DNA of 64,000 nucleotides, taken from the NCBI GenBank assembly GCA_020536535.1, contig JAHLWZ010000856.1:7677-71676 (forward strand), in the 5' to 3' direction. Below, one piece after another: positions 1-7,334 of this stretch. Under the pieces are notes generated by a model that worked only from the letters and a program-made list of their open reading frames with translations, was not told where the DNA came from and searched no databases. How positions within the stretch are numbered: position 1 is the stretch's first letter; every line of letters starts with the position of its first letter. Position numbers and translations under genes: made by a program. The stretch comes from Pelomyxa schiedti. Taxonomy: Eukaryota; Protista; Evosea.

Positions 1-1411
1 GAACTCTACAATGCCTTGAACAAAGTCGGTGCAGCCACAACAATGTATTACACCTACGAACCTCTAACATGATTAAAGCTTGGAGATCCATTTATGCTTC
101 GCGTTGTACCTGGTTCTTTGAGCCATTCTATTGTTTGTGCACTCGGCCAGTAAGACGCTACTTCAATAAAATGAGGTTAATACTTTTATAGATGTAACCT
201 TCAGTGGGGCTTGGCCCTTGGTGAACATTGTGTCCTCTTAGCACCACACATGACAGTACCTCAATCAACACTGTTAACAACACCAACAAATTTATCTGAA
301 ATACGAGTTTATTTCTCAGAGAGATCAGGACAAGGACCAGAATCACTTTCACATTTTTCCTATGTTCACACGGCATTCAGCGAGTCAATTTCACGGTTAA
401 TGTTTGGTATGACTATACCTGATACCTCTATTGAAGTATTTATTTCTATTTTTTTAGCACAACATTATTTCTGGCTGGCAAAAATGCCCATGGACAGTGT
501 ATTGGAAGCTTTACACAGATTTCTACAACCTTGGGCATCCCTTTTGGTTCACTTCACCAATAAAAAAAAAACCCCTCATCAGTAATAGACAAATGTTGCC
601 CTATACCTTGAGCACACTCAAAATACAGATTCAGAAACCTGCAACCAAACTCGTCGTTGCAGTCACCACCTGACTCAGTTAGCATTTCAAAAAACGCAGA
701 TAGATGTATGGTTACATGAGCTGTGTGAAATGCAATGCAACTGGTTTGGCTTTCTTTATATCCGAGTATTTTTCCTTCATTTTCTTTCTTCTCTCAGTCT
801 TTTGTTAAGGAACCAACTCCAGATGAAAACTTCGCTCGAACAGAAGGAAAAGAGGTTCAGGGCAACCAAAACACTCTTGCAGGAAATCTGCCCTCAGCCT
901 GCATTTTTACTGCACTCACACCTTCATCTATTATATTTTATAATACACAACAAATCGGGAACAGTTTATACGAAAACCTACCCCCTATGTATGTACTCGG
1001 TGCTCTTACAATTCTTGACATTAAACCAATAGACTGTCGACTATACCACTAACCTGGATAAGGAAATTAGACATTGTAACCCAACACAACTCATTCATGA
1101 AACTCACGTGTGTATACATCCCTCTTTGCACCACTGCGCTCACTGTCATGTTACAGCAACTTTATAACAGCTCCATCTCCGGAAGCTCCCTTAATTACTC
1201 ATATTCTTTATGCCTCAGGCTCGCAAGAAACGGTATTCTTCCACTTGTACCAATTGCCGCTCATCAACCACAAGGAACTTTGGCTAAGTGCTATTACCAA
1301 TGCTTTTCAAGCACTAATGGTTTCACAAAACCTGTAACACTACCACTACTGACAACAAACACTACTACAACAATTTTGGCCATGTTATGGTGTTATTTTT
1401 TTTCTCTCTCT

Positions 1412-3289
1412 CTACGAAGCATTGAGGGTGGTTAGTAGTTGTGTGACTTGTGATTGTACTGGTGAGTCTGGCGGGCAATCAAAAAGGTGAGCCTGAAGTT
1501 CTGCATTTTCTGCAAGACTGCCAGCAATAGGCGGGTGGCTCTTGGTTATTTGGCACAGAGACATTACTAGCCTTTCACCTACAGAGTTTTGGGAGAAATT
1601 TGTTGCGTCACCAAGGAAATGGCATTGGGAAACATACTGGAAGCATCCAAAGCGGCAGTGGCCAGGCTTTCCGCGACTGCAGTTGCACAACGCCTCGCAG
1701 CTGCAGTTGCTTTAGCGTCCTTACCGTCAAGACTAATACTATAATTATATACAAGACTGGAGGCGGCCTAAACGCATTGGTACGAGGGAAAGTGATATGC
1801 CAAAAAATAAACCTGTTTGACACCAGTGTCAGTTGACCCAAGCAAAGGCAGTATAAGGTTGAGAACTCGGTCAAGCCGTTCAGGAACTAGCATGTAAAAC
1901 TCTCCTTCCCGAGTAGCAAAGATGTTAGAAGTCAGTTCTAAGCCCATAATTTTAATTTTCCTATCCATGTGGGAGACTGTCTTCTCGATCAATGCCTTCA
2001 GAGGGTCACCTATTCCAATCAGGATCAAACTATTACAATCGCTCAGGGAAAAGCAAACCCTCATGTGAGGTGTAGTAATGTGCAACTGGGGGTACAACAA
2101 TCAGCATGCGAAAAATAAATAGCACGTAAAATAAATCTTCAGCCGGCCATGAAATCATTTTGTCTGAGGTAGTGTCAGTCAGAGTGCATTATGAGGAATT
2201 CTTGTGTTTTGGTGCATTGATGTGTGGCGTAGAGTACAGGGAAAAAACCAAAGAGAGCATAAACTGACTGGTGAGGGGGTTGCGTCATTCGAATTGGGGA
2301 TGAGGTTGGGGGAAAAAAATTGTTGAGGTGGACAAATGCATCCTTATCTTCAGCAGAAAGTTGCGAATTCTTAAGTGCTCTGACAATTGTTGTCAAGTGA
2401 GAATGAAAAAGAGGACTGAGGCTAGTGTAACCTACTTAATCATTATGGTGGCCGGTTCAACTGCACCTTTAACAGAAAGAAGTGGATTTTTGTCAGAATG
2501 CTGCTGAGCACTTGCTGTGGACATTGATGCAGCTGCCGCTGGAGCTGGAGGGACGAAAAGTGGGGACGGGGGCATGCTTTGAGGAAACTGTCAGAAGAAA
2601 AGAAGATTGGAAGAGACTACAAGCCAGTATTGCTCGCAGCAAGTTGTTTTTTCATGTCGGCCTCCATCTTTAATATGAATGGCTTGAAGGCTCTACCAGC
2701 ATCAGTATTCATTATCTCATCAGCTTGTGTCATAATCTCTGTTTGCAAATCACTTAGGCCAAAAATGGGTCTTGCTTGCAAAACCAGGAGGATTGGAGTT
2801 GCCAGTTAAAAACAAGTTGAGCTCGTTTGTGAAGTTGTTACAATTGTTGCTCAACAAACTGTAGGTTTGTGGCGTGTATTGTGGCCGTAAACCATTGACA
2901 TAATCATCGACAAGTTCCTTTGGAACAAAAGTGGAACCAAGCCTATACGAAATTAAAGCTCACATGATGAATAATCAACCCACTTGTAGCTTTTCGTCGG
3001 AGCGCCAAAAGGAGTGCGGCCCTTAAAAGAATTGAGGTAAGGAAAGCGGAAAAAGAACATACTGGCCGCATCACGCCAATTTCTCCTCCCCAAAAATACT
3101 CGTATCCATGAACAACCAAGCCTGTGTGCCTGGATGTTGCATTACATTTTGTGCAATTTTTTTTTTGGGAACCCACCATATGCCTTCTATATGCTTGCCA
3201 ACGATGGAGTCAGACAACCGAGCAGCCCATCCGCCAGAAATGTCGTAGCAGTTTAACGACACCGGTGCGCTTTCCTCATCATCACCCAT
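1412..3289 (-). CDS. PPPDE/DeSI-family isopeptidase with C-terminal helical (PUL-like) region, multi-exon
   Basis: Spliced reading gives MGDDEESAPVSLNCYDISGGWA...IEGIWHTGLVVHGYEYFWGG and YSLLSNNCNNFTNEL, the His/Cys catalytic dyad motifs of DeSI1. The 3' end is taken from the last ORF fragment (1412..1690) and is less certain. Confidence 0.85.
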
Positions 3290-3524
3290 TTTTTTTTGTT
3301 TTTGTAGGTGTAGACTCAAATTGGTGAGGGACCGAAAGGACAACTCACAATTACCTGTAAGCAAACAGGTGAGTTCTGCCAAGACAAGATTGCAAAGGGG
3401 ATCCCCCAAGTTGGTTCGGGAGTTTCCGCCTTTGAATAGTCTCGTTCTTCGGAAAAAAAGACGAAACCTTTAAAAGAGAGAGAACGAAACGACAACCAAC
3501 AACAAAGAAAAAAAAAAAAGCAAC

Positions 3525-5889
3525 ATGTTTCGTAAGATCTTTACGGTTACCAACCGAACGGGGCACGAGACCGAACTCTCCCTGGCCCCCAGTAAGCTCA
3601 ACGAGCCATCTGCCTCCCTCCTCGTCTCACGTTGCACCGACTGCACCGTGCACCTCCCCTCACAGCCTCCTCAGTCTCCCACACCCACGCCGGCCACCAC
3701 TACCACAACGCCGCCGTCGTCGTCATCACCGCCACCATCAACACCAACAGCAACAGCAACCACTGCCACAACCATCCCACAAGTCCAATCCACCGATGGT
3801 GGTGCAGTCTCGCCTCCGACGCCTACACCTCCGCCTACGCAGCCACCAACAAAGGCGGTTGATGCTAGATTCCCTACGAGTGTTACTCCTGGTCCAAAGG
3901 CGGCAAAATTGATGTGCGCCAGCCCCATTTTGTGCTACCCCCTTGTGGGATTTTTTTTTTTTTTTTTAATTTGCTATTCTTCCAGTGTAGAAAATTGTAA
4001 GAATACGACAGTTATAATTGATGTTCAGCTACTCTCGGGAACTGCAGGTTTTAATCCCTTTCTTGTACTTGCACAACTTGTTTTCCTACCCACTTTCTTC
4101 CCCTCCAGACCTTATTTCTCTAAGTGGCTGTACTGTGGAGTTCCGCAGAGTAGTACCAACACTTCAGATTGATGGTTGCACCAACCTTTCTGTCAAACTA
4201 GCGGGACCGTGGTTTACAGCTCCGGGAGTTGCTTTGATTTCGTATTTCTCTAACATTGTTTTTATTAAGTCTAATATTTTTCAAAAGAGCCAAGAATACT
4301 AATCTCCGGTTACTCCTGGGCGAGATAGAATATGCTGTACCTGACCATGATGTCCAGCAGATAACGTAAGTTGGTGTCAAGTAAGATTTTCTCATTGTGT
4401 CACAGTAAACTTGATTGCGGTCGTCTTGTCACTTGTCCAGCAGTTTGGGATGGAGCTGGGTACCCAACCACGCAAAAAGAAAAGGAATTCCAGGTACTGA
4501 TTCTATTTCTTCCGTGTAAGTAAAACATTTCCAGGATGCAAAAATGGAGAGACTTGAACAACTCATGGAAGAGCGACTACGAGGACTGACTACAATTAGT
4601 GCAAAGCCCAAACCAGCTACCACAACTCCTCCTGCCACAACAGAAACAAAGCCAATAGAAGAAACTCCAAAACCAACAGATGAATCACCAAAGCCCACCC
4701 CGGCAACTCAGCCTGCTGAATCAATCCCCCCACCTTCTGTATGCGTAGCCTTAACGCCATAGTCGTGACAAATTTGCAGGGATTATTCAGTGCTATATCT
4801 AAATTCGACGCAGCGAAGCTCAAACCTACCACTACTCACGTTACCCATGAAAATGTTGTATTTAATGAGACAAGAACACCTACTGGTTATGGACACGCAG
4901 ATGGTGATGACATTACTGTACCTTTCAATTTTTAAATATCGCAACTACCTTCTGACTTCAGATGCAGGAATACTTCGATGAGCCAGCTGTGCTTGACAAA
5001 AAAATACAACAACTTGCTGAACTTGTGAAAAACTCTCACTACATGGTAATCTACACCGGTGCCGGTATAAGTACTTCAGCCAAGATACCGGTATGGACTA
5101 GTTCACTTTCATACGGACCACTGATAAATGATAGGATTATCGAGGCCCTGAGGGTGTATGGACCAAGCGAGACAAAGGGGAGACTGTAACAATGAAAATC
5201 ACTTTGGAAGAGGCAATGCCCACCCGTGGACACATGGCCATTGCAAAACTTGTTGAACTGGGAACCTGCAAATTTGTTGTCAGTACAAATGTTGATGGTC
5301 TCCACCGAAGATCGGGTGTACCAAAGGCTAACATTGCTGAAGTGAGGAGATATTCCCGAGGATTATTCTAATAACCGAATAGGTTCATGGAAACTGTTAT
5401 CTTGAGCGCTGCAACCAGTGTGAGGCAGAGTACATGAGGACCTTTGATGTAATGAGGGATGCCCCGCCTGATGGCACCCGTCATCAAACTTCTAGACTGT
5501 GCACCAAGTGCTCTATTCCTCTCCAAGACAGCATAGTTCATTTTGGGGAAGCACTTCCTGAGGTAACAGTTTCACTTGTCCCTGCGTACTGAGATTGATT
5601 TGATTTGTACATGTAGACGGAACTGGCTAATGCACAGACTCACAGTAAGGCTGCCGATTTGGCCCTAGTTTTAGGAACAAGTAAGGATTCTCAACAACAG
5701 CTTTCTTCTAATGGTCTTGATGCAGGCATGATGGTTCAACCTGCTTGCTTGTTCCCACTAATGGCACGGCGGATGGTGATTTGCAATTTACAAAAGACTA
5801 GATATGATTCCAGAGCCCAGGTCGTTCTACATGCAAGGACTGACATAATTCTGGAAAAACTACTGGTTGCACTGGGCATAGAATTTTAA
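3525..5889 (+). CDS. Class IV (SIRT6/7-like) sirtuin with N-terminal CAP-C/cofactor-C-like beta-helix and a WH2/beta-thymosin motif, multi-exon
   Basis: Sir2 motifs: [73 protein letters not shown]. N-terminal repeats LLVSRCTDCTVHL, VENCKNTTVII, LSGCTVEF, LQIDGCTNLSV. Central GLFSAISKFDAAKLKPTTT. Confidence 0.85.
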
Positions 5890-5938
5890 GATGTAAACGC
5901 TTCAGTAAACAAAAGTATTAGTTTTCCCGTTGGTTGTT

Positions 5939-7334
5939 TTATCCTGTAAGTTGATTCATTTGGCAATAATCTACAAAGTCTGTGTACAAGCAAGGCCCTG
6001 TGAAAGGATTCCAATGAATTTCGGAAAGATTGAGTGGTGCATACAAGGGTCATCTGGGTTCCAAGTTGAAAAGTTTGGAGGAATAGCTTGTGAAAAGTCA
6101 AAGAAGCAACTCCACTGGTCTGAACAAGAGGTTAGAAGATGAGATAATTGTGACAGCTACCACCTTTATTTAACATTTTGGTGCTCCCTTCCTTGAGGAA
6201 AGTAGAGAAGTTCGTAACATGATGGAACCCTGGCCTACCCAGCAAAGCAATAGATATCATCTGACCAGCATATATACTTTCCAGTAACTGTGATGTTGGT
6301 TTATAGTTGTCGATGTGTGAAAAAAGAGATATGACCTTGTGCTCAGGAGTTTCTTTGGAAAAATCAAAGGCATACTGGTACATTTTCTTGAGTTCGGGCA
6401 CATTGGAATTGAGTGATGAGTTTATGCTTTTTAGTTTTGGAAGCAGCTCTGAAAGCGTTTTGCATCTGGAATGCACTCAGCAACCTAAAACATATAATTT
6501 GAAGTACTTGAGGGCCTTCATTCCGCCCATAAACTCTTCCTTTGAAAGGTACCCGTTTCGGGCTGCCCCAAATTTCCATGCCAAAACTAGAGTGAGAACC
6601 TTGAATAAATCAGGCAAAGAGTGGAGGAGAGGGGACAAACGTCATCAGGGGCCACTCCAAGTTGTTCACATAGAGTCTCAACACCATCCGGATTGATACT
6701 ATCTTCCCCTTTGCTAAAAGTATTAAATAAATCAAGCAGTTCATCTGGAGGGCTCGGTTCTACTGCAGTTGCAACTGGTTTGGTGGTTGCGGCTGTGGGT
6801 GTTGGTGTCACTGATGTCGTTGATGTCACAGGGCTGGGGGTTGGTGTAGAAGGTGTAGGGGAGGCACTTGTAGTTACAGTTATAGGTGCAGGTTTAGGAG
6901 TTGTGGATGTTGTTGTGGTGGAAGTGGAAGTTTTTGTGGTGGGAGTACTAGTAGGTTCCCCTTTGGCTTTACCTGGCGGGGCTGAATGGCTTCCATGAAC
7001 TTTCTCTGACTGACTTCATCAGATAGGAATAAATGGAATACAAGAAAAGACATCATACACATGGTGTGTACATGGCAGGTGACATGCACCTTTTATGTGT
7101 GGAGTACTTGCACTCTATTGGTTTTTATTGACCAGTCAGACAAGGTATCATAATTGAAAGAAACAACAACTGGTTTATTCAATAGGTTTCATTTTCGAAA
7201 ATTTTCCACGTACTTGAGCAACGGTATCCTTGTTTCGAAAACACGCCCCATATGAAATCATGGCAGTATGTGCACCATGTCAATTTGTGAAAATAATACA
7301 ATTTGAAATCGTGTCCGTCCCCAGGCCCAGACAT
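5939..7334 (-). CDS. DCN1-like (cullin-binding/PONY domain) protein with N-terminal C1 zinc finger, multi-exon
   Basis: DCN1 motifs INPDGVETLCEQLGVAPDD, LVLAWKFGA, MYQYAFDFSK, WSCFFDFS, WPCLYTDFVDY. The first exons splice to HDFKLYYFHKLTWCTYCHDFIWGVFSKQGYRCSKCKYSTHKRC...C, matching C1 spacing. Confidence 0.85.

Follow-up and report, generated by a model that had tools for sequence, protein, structure and literature searches.

At positions 3525–5889 of the window analysed (the entire 64,000-nucleotide stretch of Pelomyxa schiedti DNA), spliced RNA contigs together with the exon model define one expressed gene of 12 exons on the plus strand, encoding a product of 609 amino acids. The RNA evidence comes from a single study, four single-cell RNA-seq runs of which yielded spliced contigs, one of them (1727 nt) covering 3665–5923. 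Ten junctions are seen directly in RNA contigs, i.e., 4047/4109, 4241/4288, 4365/4406, 4493/4535 and 4738/4780 as well as 4917/4968, 5090/5135, 5341/5383, 5562/5617 and 5680/5726, all of them with GT..AG ends. The first junction of the gene (3913/3986), which adjoins a T-run, was derived from the RNA contig's own coordinates, and its intron (3914–3985) likewise has GT..AG ends. The exons add up to 1830 nt, corresponding to 609 codons plus stop, and their translation is identical to the NCBI protein P0001 of P. schiedti, the database name of which is just 'silent information regulator family protein'. The sequence of this record served as the full-length protein in all analyses. The start codon at 3525 is the first in-frame ATG downstream of an upstream stop, and the stop codon occupies 5887–5889. 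The 5' end (3525–3664) lies outside the RNA coverage; residues 1–45 nonetheless form part of the beta-helix in the AF2 model.

The first-pass annotation of this locus, made from the sequence alone, had joined exons through GT-AG introns into a single gene that starts with the ATG at 3525 and stops at 5889. Both proposals are borne out by the spliced contig (3665–5923), by the identity of the model with P0001 and by the ten junctions read in RNA contigs, the eleventh being taken from contig coordinates. The junction near 4230–4290 that had been called less clear is now placed at 4241/4288 by RNA contigs, and the proposed thymosin-like exon (4780–4836) had to be extended, since RNA contigs give 4780–4917 (aa 319–364). 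Wrong merging by annotation of two adjacent genes, one for a CARP/WH2 protein and one for a sirtuin, is extremely improbable. An ATG is present at 4962, and retention of intron 7 (4918–4967, GT..AG) would give a stop at 4933–4935 after exon 7. However, this ATG is located within the spliced-out intron, which rules out a separate sirtuin gene. Three RNA contigs splice from 4917 to 4968, one contig runs from 3665 to 5923, and homologues from other genera represent the same colinear protein. The skip from 4917 to 4968 was found in runs X1 and X2, and in a contig of X3 the end of exon 7 is present as a loose end ahead of 4968. An independent sirtuin start near ~4960, considered in the first-pass annotation, was not found; the sirtuin exon begins at 4968 in three contigs.

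Exon 1 (3525–3913; aa 1–130; RNA contig over 3665–3913) encodes the first CARP beta-helix turns (3525–3659; aa 1–45) and a disordered Pro/Thr-rich insert (3660–3884; aa 46–120), after which the beta-helix resumes. Exon 2 (3986–4047; aa 130–151; 62 nt, from contig coordinates) contributes a CARP beta-helix turn, exon 3 (4109–4241; aa 151–195; both junctions in two runs) the CARP core and exon 4 (4288–4365; aa 195–221; junctions in RNA contigs) another part of the CARP beta-helix. Exon 5 (4406–4493; aa 221–250; RNA junctions) carries the last CARP strands, an (E/D)GxGYxTT motif and the beginning of a long helix, which ends in exon 6 (4535–4738; aa 251–318; RNA junctions) at aa 272 (~4600), this exon also encoding a disordered Pro/Thr linker.

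According to family profile and AF2 fold match, the N-terminal part forms a CARP beta-helix of the CAP type, into which a Pro/Thr-rich loop is inserted, in agreement with the CAP-C-like beta-helix proposed earlier. The Pfam CAP_C profile (curated cutoff 23.8 bits) is borderline, with 25.1 bits on aa 1–330 but 23.2 bits on the whole protein, the match spanning aa 125–205; the profile matches 27 of 37 relatives (best 2e-15). In a comparison of the family profile with PDB, the CARP domain of CAP1 (6fm2_B) was retrieved at 1.1e-14. A TBCC/RP2 identity of the beta-helix was rejected, since RP2 reached 0.014 versus 1e-14 for CAP1 and TBCC merely 16–17 bits. The AF2 model displays regular short strands with pLDDT >90 across most of the beta-helix (strands at aa 5–44 with block-mean pLDDT of ~80–97), and in the insert pLDDT is <60 for ~aa 60–120 and <50 for aa 63–95. 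The top six Foldseek matches of this model are all CAP CARP structures (probability 1.0), the first of them being CAP1 CARP (6fm2) in complex with ADP-actin.

Individually, the four CARP exons gave no match in a per-exon Pfam scan because they are too short. Six-frame genome scans with the CAP_C, TBCC and Thymosin profiles left this locus unflagged, phmmer searches of PDB sequences with either exon 3 or exon 7 by itself yielded chance-level matches only, and a word-indexed search for homologues of the CARP region returned solely the protein itself. A scan with the PF01213 profile had zero matches anywhere and is uninformative. Exon 3 as query recovered P0001 at 100% identity; P0002–P0009, also matched in this search, are long multi-repeat proteins. 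The (E/D)GxGYxTT motif following CARP (aa 236–243) recurs in the family (E/D in 34/37, G239 in 35/37, Y in 26/37). AF2 places the long helix at aa 244–272 and assigns pLDDT <50 to aa 282–314 of the linker. A DUF4798 match on the long helix (E 0.001–0.01, below cutoff) was treated as chance.

The C-terminal half of CAP/Srv2 is similar to the P. schiedti protein in having a homologous CARP beta-helix and a WH2-class motif (hydrophobic helix, then LK). The order differs, with WH2 preceding CARP in CAP/Srv2, CARP preceding WH2 in P. schiedti, and WH2-SIR2-CARP in relatives. Unlike CAP/Srv2, the P. schiedti protein possesses neither the N-terminal helical-folded domain nor the profilin-binding polyproline; its I-to-L spacing is 8 residues (thymosin-type) versus 10 in CAP1, and CARP is followed by the (E/D)GxGYxTT motif and helix instead of a free C-terminal tail. 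Assignment as a CAP orthologue was rejected, as the order is CARP-helix-linker-WH2-sirtuin and CARP is not C-terminal. The strongest CAP_C locus of the P. schiedti genome, on contig C213, is separate and much stronger, and probably encodes the canonical CAP. The CAP actin-contact residues are kept in part. The CAP1 interface residues compared were K347/Y351/Y353, K365/N367/D372, Y418/F447 and D446/E449, the D446–E449 region being unaligned. The position of K365 is K/R and that of D372 is E/D, each in 27/37 family members; these two are the only ones kept as like charges among the CAP1 residues where mutation reduces or abolishes ADP-actin binding, and N367, Y351, Y353 and Y418 are not conserved in the family alignment.

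Exon 7 (4780–4917; aa 319–364), symmetric in phase (0-0) and bounded by junctions 4738/4780 and 4917/4968, encodes a beta-thymosin/WH2 motif (4780–4839; aa 319–338) and, downstream of it, a flexible tether (4840–4917). Judged at the family level by profile comparison, the motif is a beta-thymosin/WH2 homologue, as had been supposed before. Exon 7 alone scores below the cutoff of the Pfam Thymosin profile (E 0.082, 13.1 bits; cutoff 24.8), and Pfam thymosin/WH2 profiles gave no match on aa 330–400 of P0001. A motif profile of 27 segments, compared with PDB, matched thymosin beta-4 chimeras (2.1e-9) and thymosin beta-9 (1.4e-6), as well as, more weakly, ciboulot (2e-3) and N-WASP (0.08), with nothing else below E = 1. 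Homologue P0060 scores above the curated Pfam cutoff with all three profiles, CAP_C, Thymosin (25.6 bits) and SIR2.

In P0001, the amphipathic helix and LKxT are present at thymosin spacing, arranged as L320/F321, I324, F327 and then L332-K333-P334-T335, with the same I-to-LK spacing as in thymosin beta-4. Of the 37 aligned members, 27 share the motif; L332 and T337 are invariant, I324 and F327 occur in at least 90%, and the I, F, L layout likewise in at least 90% of members, while P0001 has TTT where xET stands in most of them. AF2 predicts a helix at aa 320–325 within the motif; the tether comprises a 13-residue low-confidence stretch (aa 339–351) and then the sirtuin's ordered N-terminal extension (~aa 352–360). 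Pattern and spacing match residues 6–22 of thymosin beta-4. Whereas beta-thymosins, ciboulot and actobindin (Pfam PF01290/WH2) are small free peptides or tandem repeats, a single motif resides here inside a 609-aa enzyme; the P. schiedti protein continues into the sirtuin, and an equivalent of the pointed-end helix at the C-terminus of thymosin beta-4 was not recognised in it.

The sirtuin (aa 365–609, plus stop) is encoded by exons 8–12 (4968–5090, 5135–5341, 5383–5562, 5617–5680 and 5726–5889), the junctions of which were found in up to four RNA runs. On the basis of profile matches and alignment, it is an intact class IV (SIRT6/7-like) sirtuin with the full set of catalytic residues; the complete SIRT6/7-type Sir2 domain with catalytic His and Zn cysteines described in the first-pass annotation is thereby upheld, and all motifs quoted there are present in the gene product. 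Pfam SIR2 matches at 4.2e-29 (102 bits, cutoff 24). The closest solved chains are SIRT7 (4.6e-53) and SIRT6 (3.3e-52), next-best being bacterial/archaeal Sir2 (1e-29), then SIRT5 and SIRT3 (1e-16). Invariant in the 37-sequence alignment are (i) the NAD-binding GAGIS motif (G395–S399), (ii) the catalytic H476 (codon 5386–5388) and (iii) all four Zn-ribbon cysteines C484, C487, C514 and C517 (5410–5511). AF2 pLDDT of the sirtuin is 84–98 in every block except one (74). The likeness to SIRT6/SIRT7 extends over the full-length catalytic core (E ~1e-52), including GAGIS, catalytic His, the four Zn cysteines and a GVWT motif. In contrast to both, the P. schiedti protein carries cytoskeletal modules in an N-terminal extension of 364 residues and is devoid of the chromatin-binding C-terminal tails.

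ADP-ribosyltransferase activity has been reported for SIRT6-type enzymes, and the enzyme could in principle act chiefly as a mono-ADP-ribosyltransferase of actin, blocking polymerisation as an endogenous counterpart of the bacterial actin-ADP-ribosylating toxins. This appears quite improbable: the sequence holds nothing to separate such an activity from deacylation, and the protein keeps the complete catalytic set of a deacylase.

As judged from sequence comparison, the P. schiedti gene belongs to a WH2-sirtuin family of Amoebozoa and Heterolobosea, and this family of amoeboid protists is apparently undescribed so far. It comprises three forms, i.e., CARP-WH2-SIR2, WH2-SIR2-CARP and WH2-SIR2, all of which are found in Balamuthia (P0049, P0098, P0067). 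In P. schiedti itself, contigs C16, C790 and C291 harbour paralogues of the gene. The WH2 motif is present in 43 of 120 class IV relatives, always 72–95 residues ahead of GAGIS, with CARP N-terminal, C-terminal or absent. A zf-UBP domain is found in sister sirtuins from Pelomyxa and Mastigamoeba, and YEATS-sirtuins (P0073, P0082, P0124) also occur among the class IV relatives. Some sources label relatives as 'mono-ADP-ribosyltransferase sirtuin 6', which is a transferred label only. When the sirtuin domains were placed on a quick maximum-likelihood tree, the backbone of which is weak, the architectures came out interleaved and P0001 joined Archamoebae zf-UBP sirtuins (SH-aLRT 97), suggesting free shuffling of modules. 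That the CARP-WH2-sirtuin architecture arose only once is, tentatively, not supported by this tree.

Archamoebae also have zf-UBP sirtuins that contain CARP but no WH2 (P0012, P0040, P0020, P0034, P0099 and Mastigella P0249), which renders an actin-binding role of CARP in the P. schiedti protein less certain. Of the two-module actin tether proposed in the first-pass annotation, the WH2 homology thus stands, while the CARP part is weaker. The modules might even bind no actin at all, with CARP serving as a dimerisation or scaffold domain common to many class IV sirtuins of Amoebozoa and the thymosin-like helix being reused for another partner or an intramolecular contact. In favour of this are the zf-UBP sirtuins just mentioned, the only partial conservation of the CAP1 actin interface and the interleaved architectures with P0001 among Archamoebae zf-UBP sirtuins. 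A complex prediction of P0001 (aa 322–375, a segment without the motif's G319–F321) with Pelomyxa palustris actin (P0193) likewise gave no support, although its score of 0.01 falls into the 'no answer' class and is not counted as evidence against binding. However, the actin-contact positions of thymosin beta-4/WH2 (four hydrophobic helix positions, LK and T) are exactly kept, the motif profile finds solely actin-binding WH2/thymosin chains in PDB, and the combination of CARP with WH2 recurs in two permuted orders, the same pair binding G-actin in CAP. Modules without any actin partner are therefore considered unlikely.

Instead, the WH2-sirtuin family probably brings a sirtuin to actin; both its binding to actin and its possible action on it are inferences. 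The chances are about even that WH2 docks the enzyme on monomeric actin for NAD+-dependent action on actin itself or on a protein riding on the monomer. The motif would bind the actin monomer at the cleft between subdomains 1 and 3, for which thymosin beta-4 and the WH2 of CAP provide precedent, and docking would keep the sirtuin active site in reach of the bound monomer. Using NAD+, the enzyme may then deacylate lysines on actin or on the monomer-riding protein, ADP-ribosylation of either being less likely than deacylation. Binding of the thymosin type would hold the bound monomer out of filaments. CARP may raise the affinity for ADP-actin, dimerise the enzyme as in CAP, or both; in CAP, WH2 and CARP jointly bind G-actin (PMC5951797). 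The fixed distance of 72–95 residues between motif and NAD site points to a geometric relation of bound actin and active site.

Class IV sirtuins are nuclear where studied, including AcSir2 of Acanthamoeba castellanii (PMC7376869), which counts against action on actin. With AcSir2 there is a precedent for the fusion of a targeting/reader module to a class IV sirtuin in Amoebozoa, but its module is YEATS, an acyl-lysine reader, instead of the actin modules of the P. schiedti protein, and the enzyme, which is nuclear, acts in encystation (PMC7376869). One may ask whether G-actin is a regulator rather than a substrate: WH2, perhaps with CARP, would sense the monomer pool and thereby steer a sirtuin that targets chromatin or other proteins, either in its localisation or in its activity, comparable to the RPEL motifs of MRTF, by which G-actin levels govern nuclear import. 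Such a role is rather unlikely, even though the class IV sirtuins studied so far are chromatin enzymes, the catalytic domain is nearest to SIRT7 and SIRT6, and the WH2 evidence is equally consistent with binding in the service of any substrate. Against it stands the motif-to-NAD-site distance, which is short and fixed in all three architectures. As an analogy only for a sirtuin brought to actin, HDAC6 is a lysine deacetylase steered to the cytoskeleton by accessory domains and also has zf-UBP; its fold is unrelated (Zn-dependent HDAC versus NAD+-dependent sirtuin), and it contains neither WH2 nor CARP.

Full-text literature searches found no paper describing the CARP/WH2/sirtuin architecture. 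The earlier view of an undescribed architecture holds in this respect, but the protein is not a one-off, being instead one variant within a protist family of wide distribution. To our knowledge, no sirtuin with a built-in actin-monomer motif has been described. Actin carries many lysine acylations, and we know of no dedicated eraser for them. Amoebal class IV sirtuins extend well past chromatin-type architectures, comprising WH2, CARP, zf-UBP, YEATS and Kelch forms. This diversity matters for annotation, since labels stop at 'silent information regulator' or 'sirtuin 6/7'. The family constitutes a simple, testable system: the binding rules of the motif and the catalytic His are known, and orthologues exist in the culturable Naegleria and Balamuthia. 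As a possible though doubtful extension, WH2-sirtuins might be conserved actin-directed NAD+-dependent enzymes of amoeboid eukaryotes that, docked by their thymosin-type motif, deacylate or ADP-ribosylate G-actin and thereby tie the polymerisable actin pool to the NAD+/redox state. If true, fermentative metabolism would be linked directly to motility in the anaerobe Pelomyxa.

The gene at 3525-5889 (plus strand) belongs to Pelomyxa schiedti, a free-living anaerobic archamoeba whose genome was obtained via single-cell genomics (PMC8887013). Reading of the three frames over 3400-6000 hinted at a gene split by short introns, and spliced contigs of the locus are contained in four single-cell RNA-seq runs of a single study (labelled 'protist metagenome'); since these contigs lack the introns, they derive from RNA rather than contaminating DNA. 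Ten junctions were seen directly in RNA contigs, all with GT..AG ends (flanking exon ends 4047/4109, 4241/4288, 4365/4406, 4493/4535, 4738/4780, 4917/4968, 5090/5135, 5341/5383, 5562/5617 and 5680/5726), while the first intron (3913/3986), located beside a T-run, was derived from the RNA contig's own coordinates. All 11 introns measure 40-72 nt. The GT-AG introns, start and stop proposed in the first-pass annotation were retained, but some of its junctions had to be corrected from the RNA contigs. The resulting 12 exons sum up to 1830 nt (609 codons plus stop) and translate exactly (local script comparison) to P0001, the NCBI entry 'silent information regulator family protein [Pelomyxa schiedti]'. 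This 609-aa protein was retrieved with 100 % identity from 1.84 billion representatives by the 43 aa of exon 3, and it or segments of it served for the subsequent protein-level analyses. Position 3525 is the first in-frame ATG downstream of an upstream stop; RNA coverage of the gene starts at 3665, leaving 3525-3664 without RNA.

A single 1727-nt RNA contig corresponds to 3665-5923 and thus takes in the β-helix portion, the exon with the motif and the sirtuin, in agreement with the original proposal of one gene. An independent sirtuin gene starting from the ATG at 4962, the main counter-hypothesis of that proposal, was rejected, since this ATG resides within intron 7 (4918-4967) in the RNA contigs. 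At 3714-3732, where exon 1 encodes the Pro/Thr-rich loop, the RNA contig of one run shows five substitutions relative to the genome as well as an extra CCG triplet after 3725 that keeps the frame; allelic or strain variation could account for this, as could collapse of the low-complexity sequence during assembly. Downstream, RNA contigs at 5970-6100 contain an intron (5997-6043) with CT..AC ends, indicating a convergent minus-strand gene; the end of that gene's transcript lies no more than about 50 nt from the sirtuin mRNA 3' end (5923). Upstream, about 235 nt separate the ATG at 3525 from the start of a divergent minus-strand ORF (2943-3289), which presumably resembles a PPPDE/DeSI-type peptidase; two exon-sized pieces of it yielded no Pfam match at E up to 0.01.

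On every sequence test, P0001 qualifies as a class IV sirtuin, as anticipated from its SIRT6/7-type features. Pfam SIR2 matches with 4.2e-29, and the nearest solved chains are SIRT7 (4.6e-53) and SIRT6 (3.3e-52), with other classes far behind. Among 37 relatives, the NAD-binding motif GAGIS (G395-S399), the catalytic H476 and all four Zn cysteines show no variation, and the domain is modelled with pLDDT values of 84-98 per ten-residue block, with one exception at 74 (full-length AF2 model).

Thymosin/WH2 motifs bind G-actin at the barbed-face cleft. The motif of P0001 (aa 319-338) begins with G319 exactly at the start of exon 7 (4780-4917), a symmetric exon of phase 0-0. Pfam Thymosin matches the P0001 motif alone with E 0.08 only. 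In homologue P0060, CAP_C, Thymosin and SIR2 all score above their curated Pfam cutoffs. Among relatives, the consensus L-x-x-I-x-x-F-N-K-x-x-L-x-x-x-E-T is strongly conserved, with L332 and T337 invariant and I324 and F327 present in at least 90 %. A 27-segment profile searched against all PDB sequences matches thymosin β-4 constructs (2.1e-9, 3.7e-6, 1.8e-5), thymosin β-9 (1.4e-6), ciboulot (7.7e-5 and 2e-3) and N-WASP (0.08), and no other chain below E = 1, corroborating the initial assignment. The AF2 model predicts a short helix (aa 320-325), a low-confidence tether (aa 339-351) and an ordered N-terminal extension of the sirtuin from about aa 352-360.

The β-helix produced no Pfam match when exons were scanned singly. 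For P0001, CAP_C scores 23.2 bits with the whole protein and 25.1 bits with aa 1-330 (cutoff 23.8), and TBCC 16-17 bits only. A profile of 37 N- or C-terminal family domains matches CARP of mouse and human CAP1, Cryptosporidium CAP and yeast CAP (1e-14 to 3e-11), but RP2 with merely 0.014. In the AF2 model built for aa 1-375, the confident parts are aa 1-45 and 121-270, the intervening Pro/Thr-rich disordered loop (aa 46-120) being inserted within the β-helix; the top six Foldseek matches of this model are CAP CARP structures, the first being CAP1 CARP in complex with ADP-actin. The suspected CAP-C-like nature is supported. An orthologue of CAP itself was rejected, because the module order differs, the N-terminal CAP domain is absent and a far stronger CAP_C locus exists on contig C213. 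CAP uses its WH2 domain to bind ATP-G-actin and its dimeric CARP domain, through two interfaces, to bind ADP-G-actin; joint mutation of K365, D372 and N367 of CAP1 abolishes ADP-actin binding (PMC5951797). Like charge is found at the K365 and D372 positions in 27 of the 37 family members each; N367, Y351, Y353 and Y418 are not conserved. The contribution of the CARP domain is less secure than that of the motif; it may serve ADP-actin binding, enzyme dimerisation, or both.

The sirtuin part retrieves 466 relatives at E < 1e-10. The motif HMM is positive in 43 of the best 120, the motif always starting 72-95 residues before GAGIS. In this architecture search, the named taxa extend the finding within Amoebozoa (Archamoebae, Discosea, Tubulinea) and to Heterolobosea; in the ESM Atlas, the single close cluster (68 members) is eukaryotic throughout, with Discosea in the majority. 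Three architectures occur among WH2-sirtuins: CARP-WH2-SIR2 (P0001, Balamuthia P0049, Naegleria lovaniensis, N. fowleri, Willaertia magna), WH2-SIR2-CARP with the motif at the extreme N-terminus (Balamuthia P0098, Pyxidicula, Flabellula), and WH2-SIR2 alone (about 340-430 aa; Balamuthia P0067). P0044 (760 aa, EukProt) carries tandem CARP domains (aa 2-165 and 193-395) followed by WH2 motif and sirtuin. CARP also occurs without WH2: motif-less Archamoebae sirtuins combine a CARP-like domain with an N-terminal zf-UBP, among them P0012 and P0040 of Pelomyxa, P0034 and P0099 of Mastigamoeba, and P0249 of Mastigella. Domain order in P0012, P0040 (both P. schiedti) and P0249 (Mastigella eilhardi) is zf-UBP, CARP-like domain, sirtuin; the M. 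eilhardi zf-UBP sirtuin has four transcript isoforms (393-587 aa). A Kelch-sirtuin (P0128) is also present in P. schiedti. Together, these proteins show a broad range of targeting modules on one catalytic type. In a quick maximum-likelihood tree of sirtuin domains, architectures are interleaved and P0001 groups with the Archamoebae zf-UBP sirtuins (SH-aLRT 97), suggesting module shuffling among paralogues, albeit on a weak backbone.

Further loci of this kind exist in the P. schiedti genome assembly, which contains at least 37 SIR2 matches. On contig C16 (229500-237500), a paralogue at locus positions about 470-3200 has the same CARP domain (exon 3 identity 50 %, WDGAGYPTT present), followed by a second, divergent CARP-like β-helix (~1740-1950) and a class IV sirtuin from ~2480, representing one gene or two; no thymosin-like motif was seen at ~470-3200. 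On contig C790 (63306-66389, minus strand), a thymosin-like motif, scoring 33.5 bits against the motif profile, comes right after the Met of an ORF; with class IV sirtuin exons downstream of it, the locus is classified by sequence as a WH2-SIR2 type paralogue. On contig C291 (69245-72316, plus strand, ~1500-2950), an N-terminal thymosin-like motif (35.7 bits; best Pfam Thymosin match of the genome, 20.6 bits) precedes a stretch rich in Ser and Pro, after which come a divergent CARP-like segment and, at the locus end, a typical sirtuin lead-in. The Actin profile yields at least 88 matches at E < 1e-20, including ~20 near-full-length canonical actins, a very large gene family for a 52-Mb assembly.

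Established for the P. schiedti gene are expression, three homologous modules, an intact catalytic set and a conserved motif position. The motif probably binds actin; it would anchor the sirtuin to a monomer, with the short tether keeping the active site nearby. The docked enzyme would then deacylate lysines of actin or of a monomer-riding protein; ADP-ribosylation would be a less likely alternative. That the substrate is actin or an actin-bound protein is more tentative, at slightly short of an even chance. A complex prediction of actin with the motif peptide lacking its first three residues gave 'no answer' and weighs neither way.

Among published proteins, Acanthamoeba AcSir2 comes closest: this nuclear class IV sirtuin has YEATS as partner module (PMC7376869). 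In line with the first-pass annotation, the literature searched yielded no account of a sirtuin that bears WH2 or CARP; at incomplete full-text coverage, this amounts to absence of evidence and no more. A review on the actin-binding proteins of Amoebozoa, P. schiedti included, mentions none. The family proteins and their precomputed Pfam domains are already in databases. New here are the recognition of the family as such and its actin-directed reading, a plausible proposal for the function of the P. schiedti gene.
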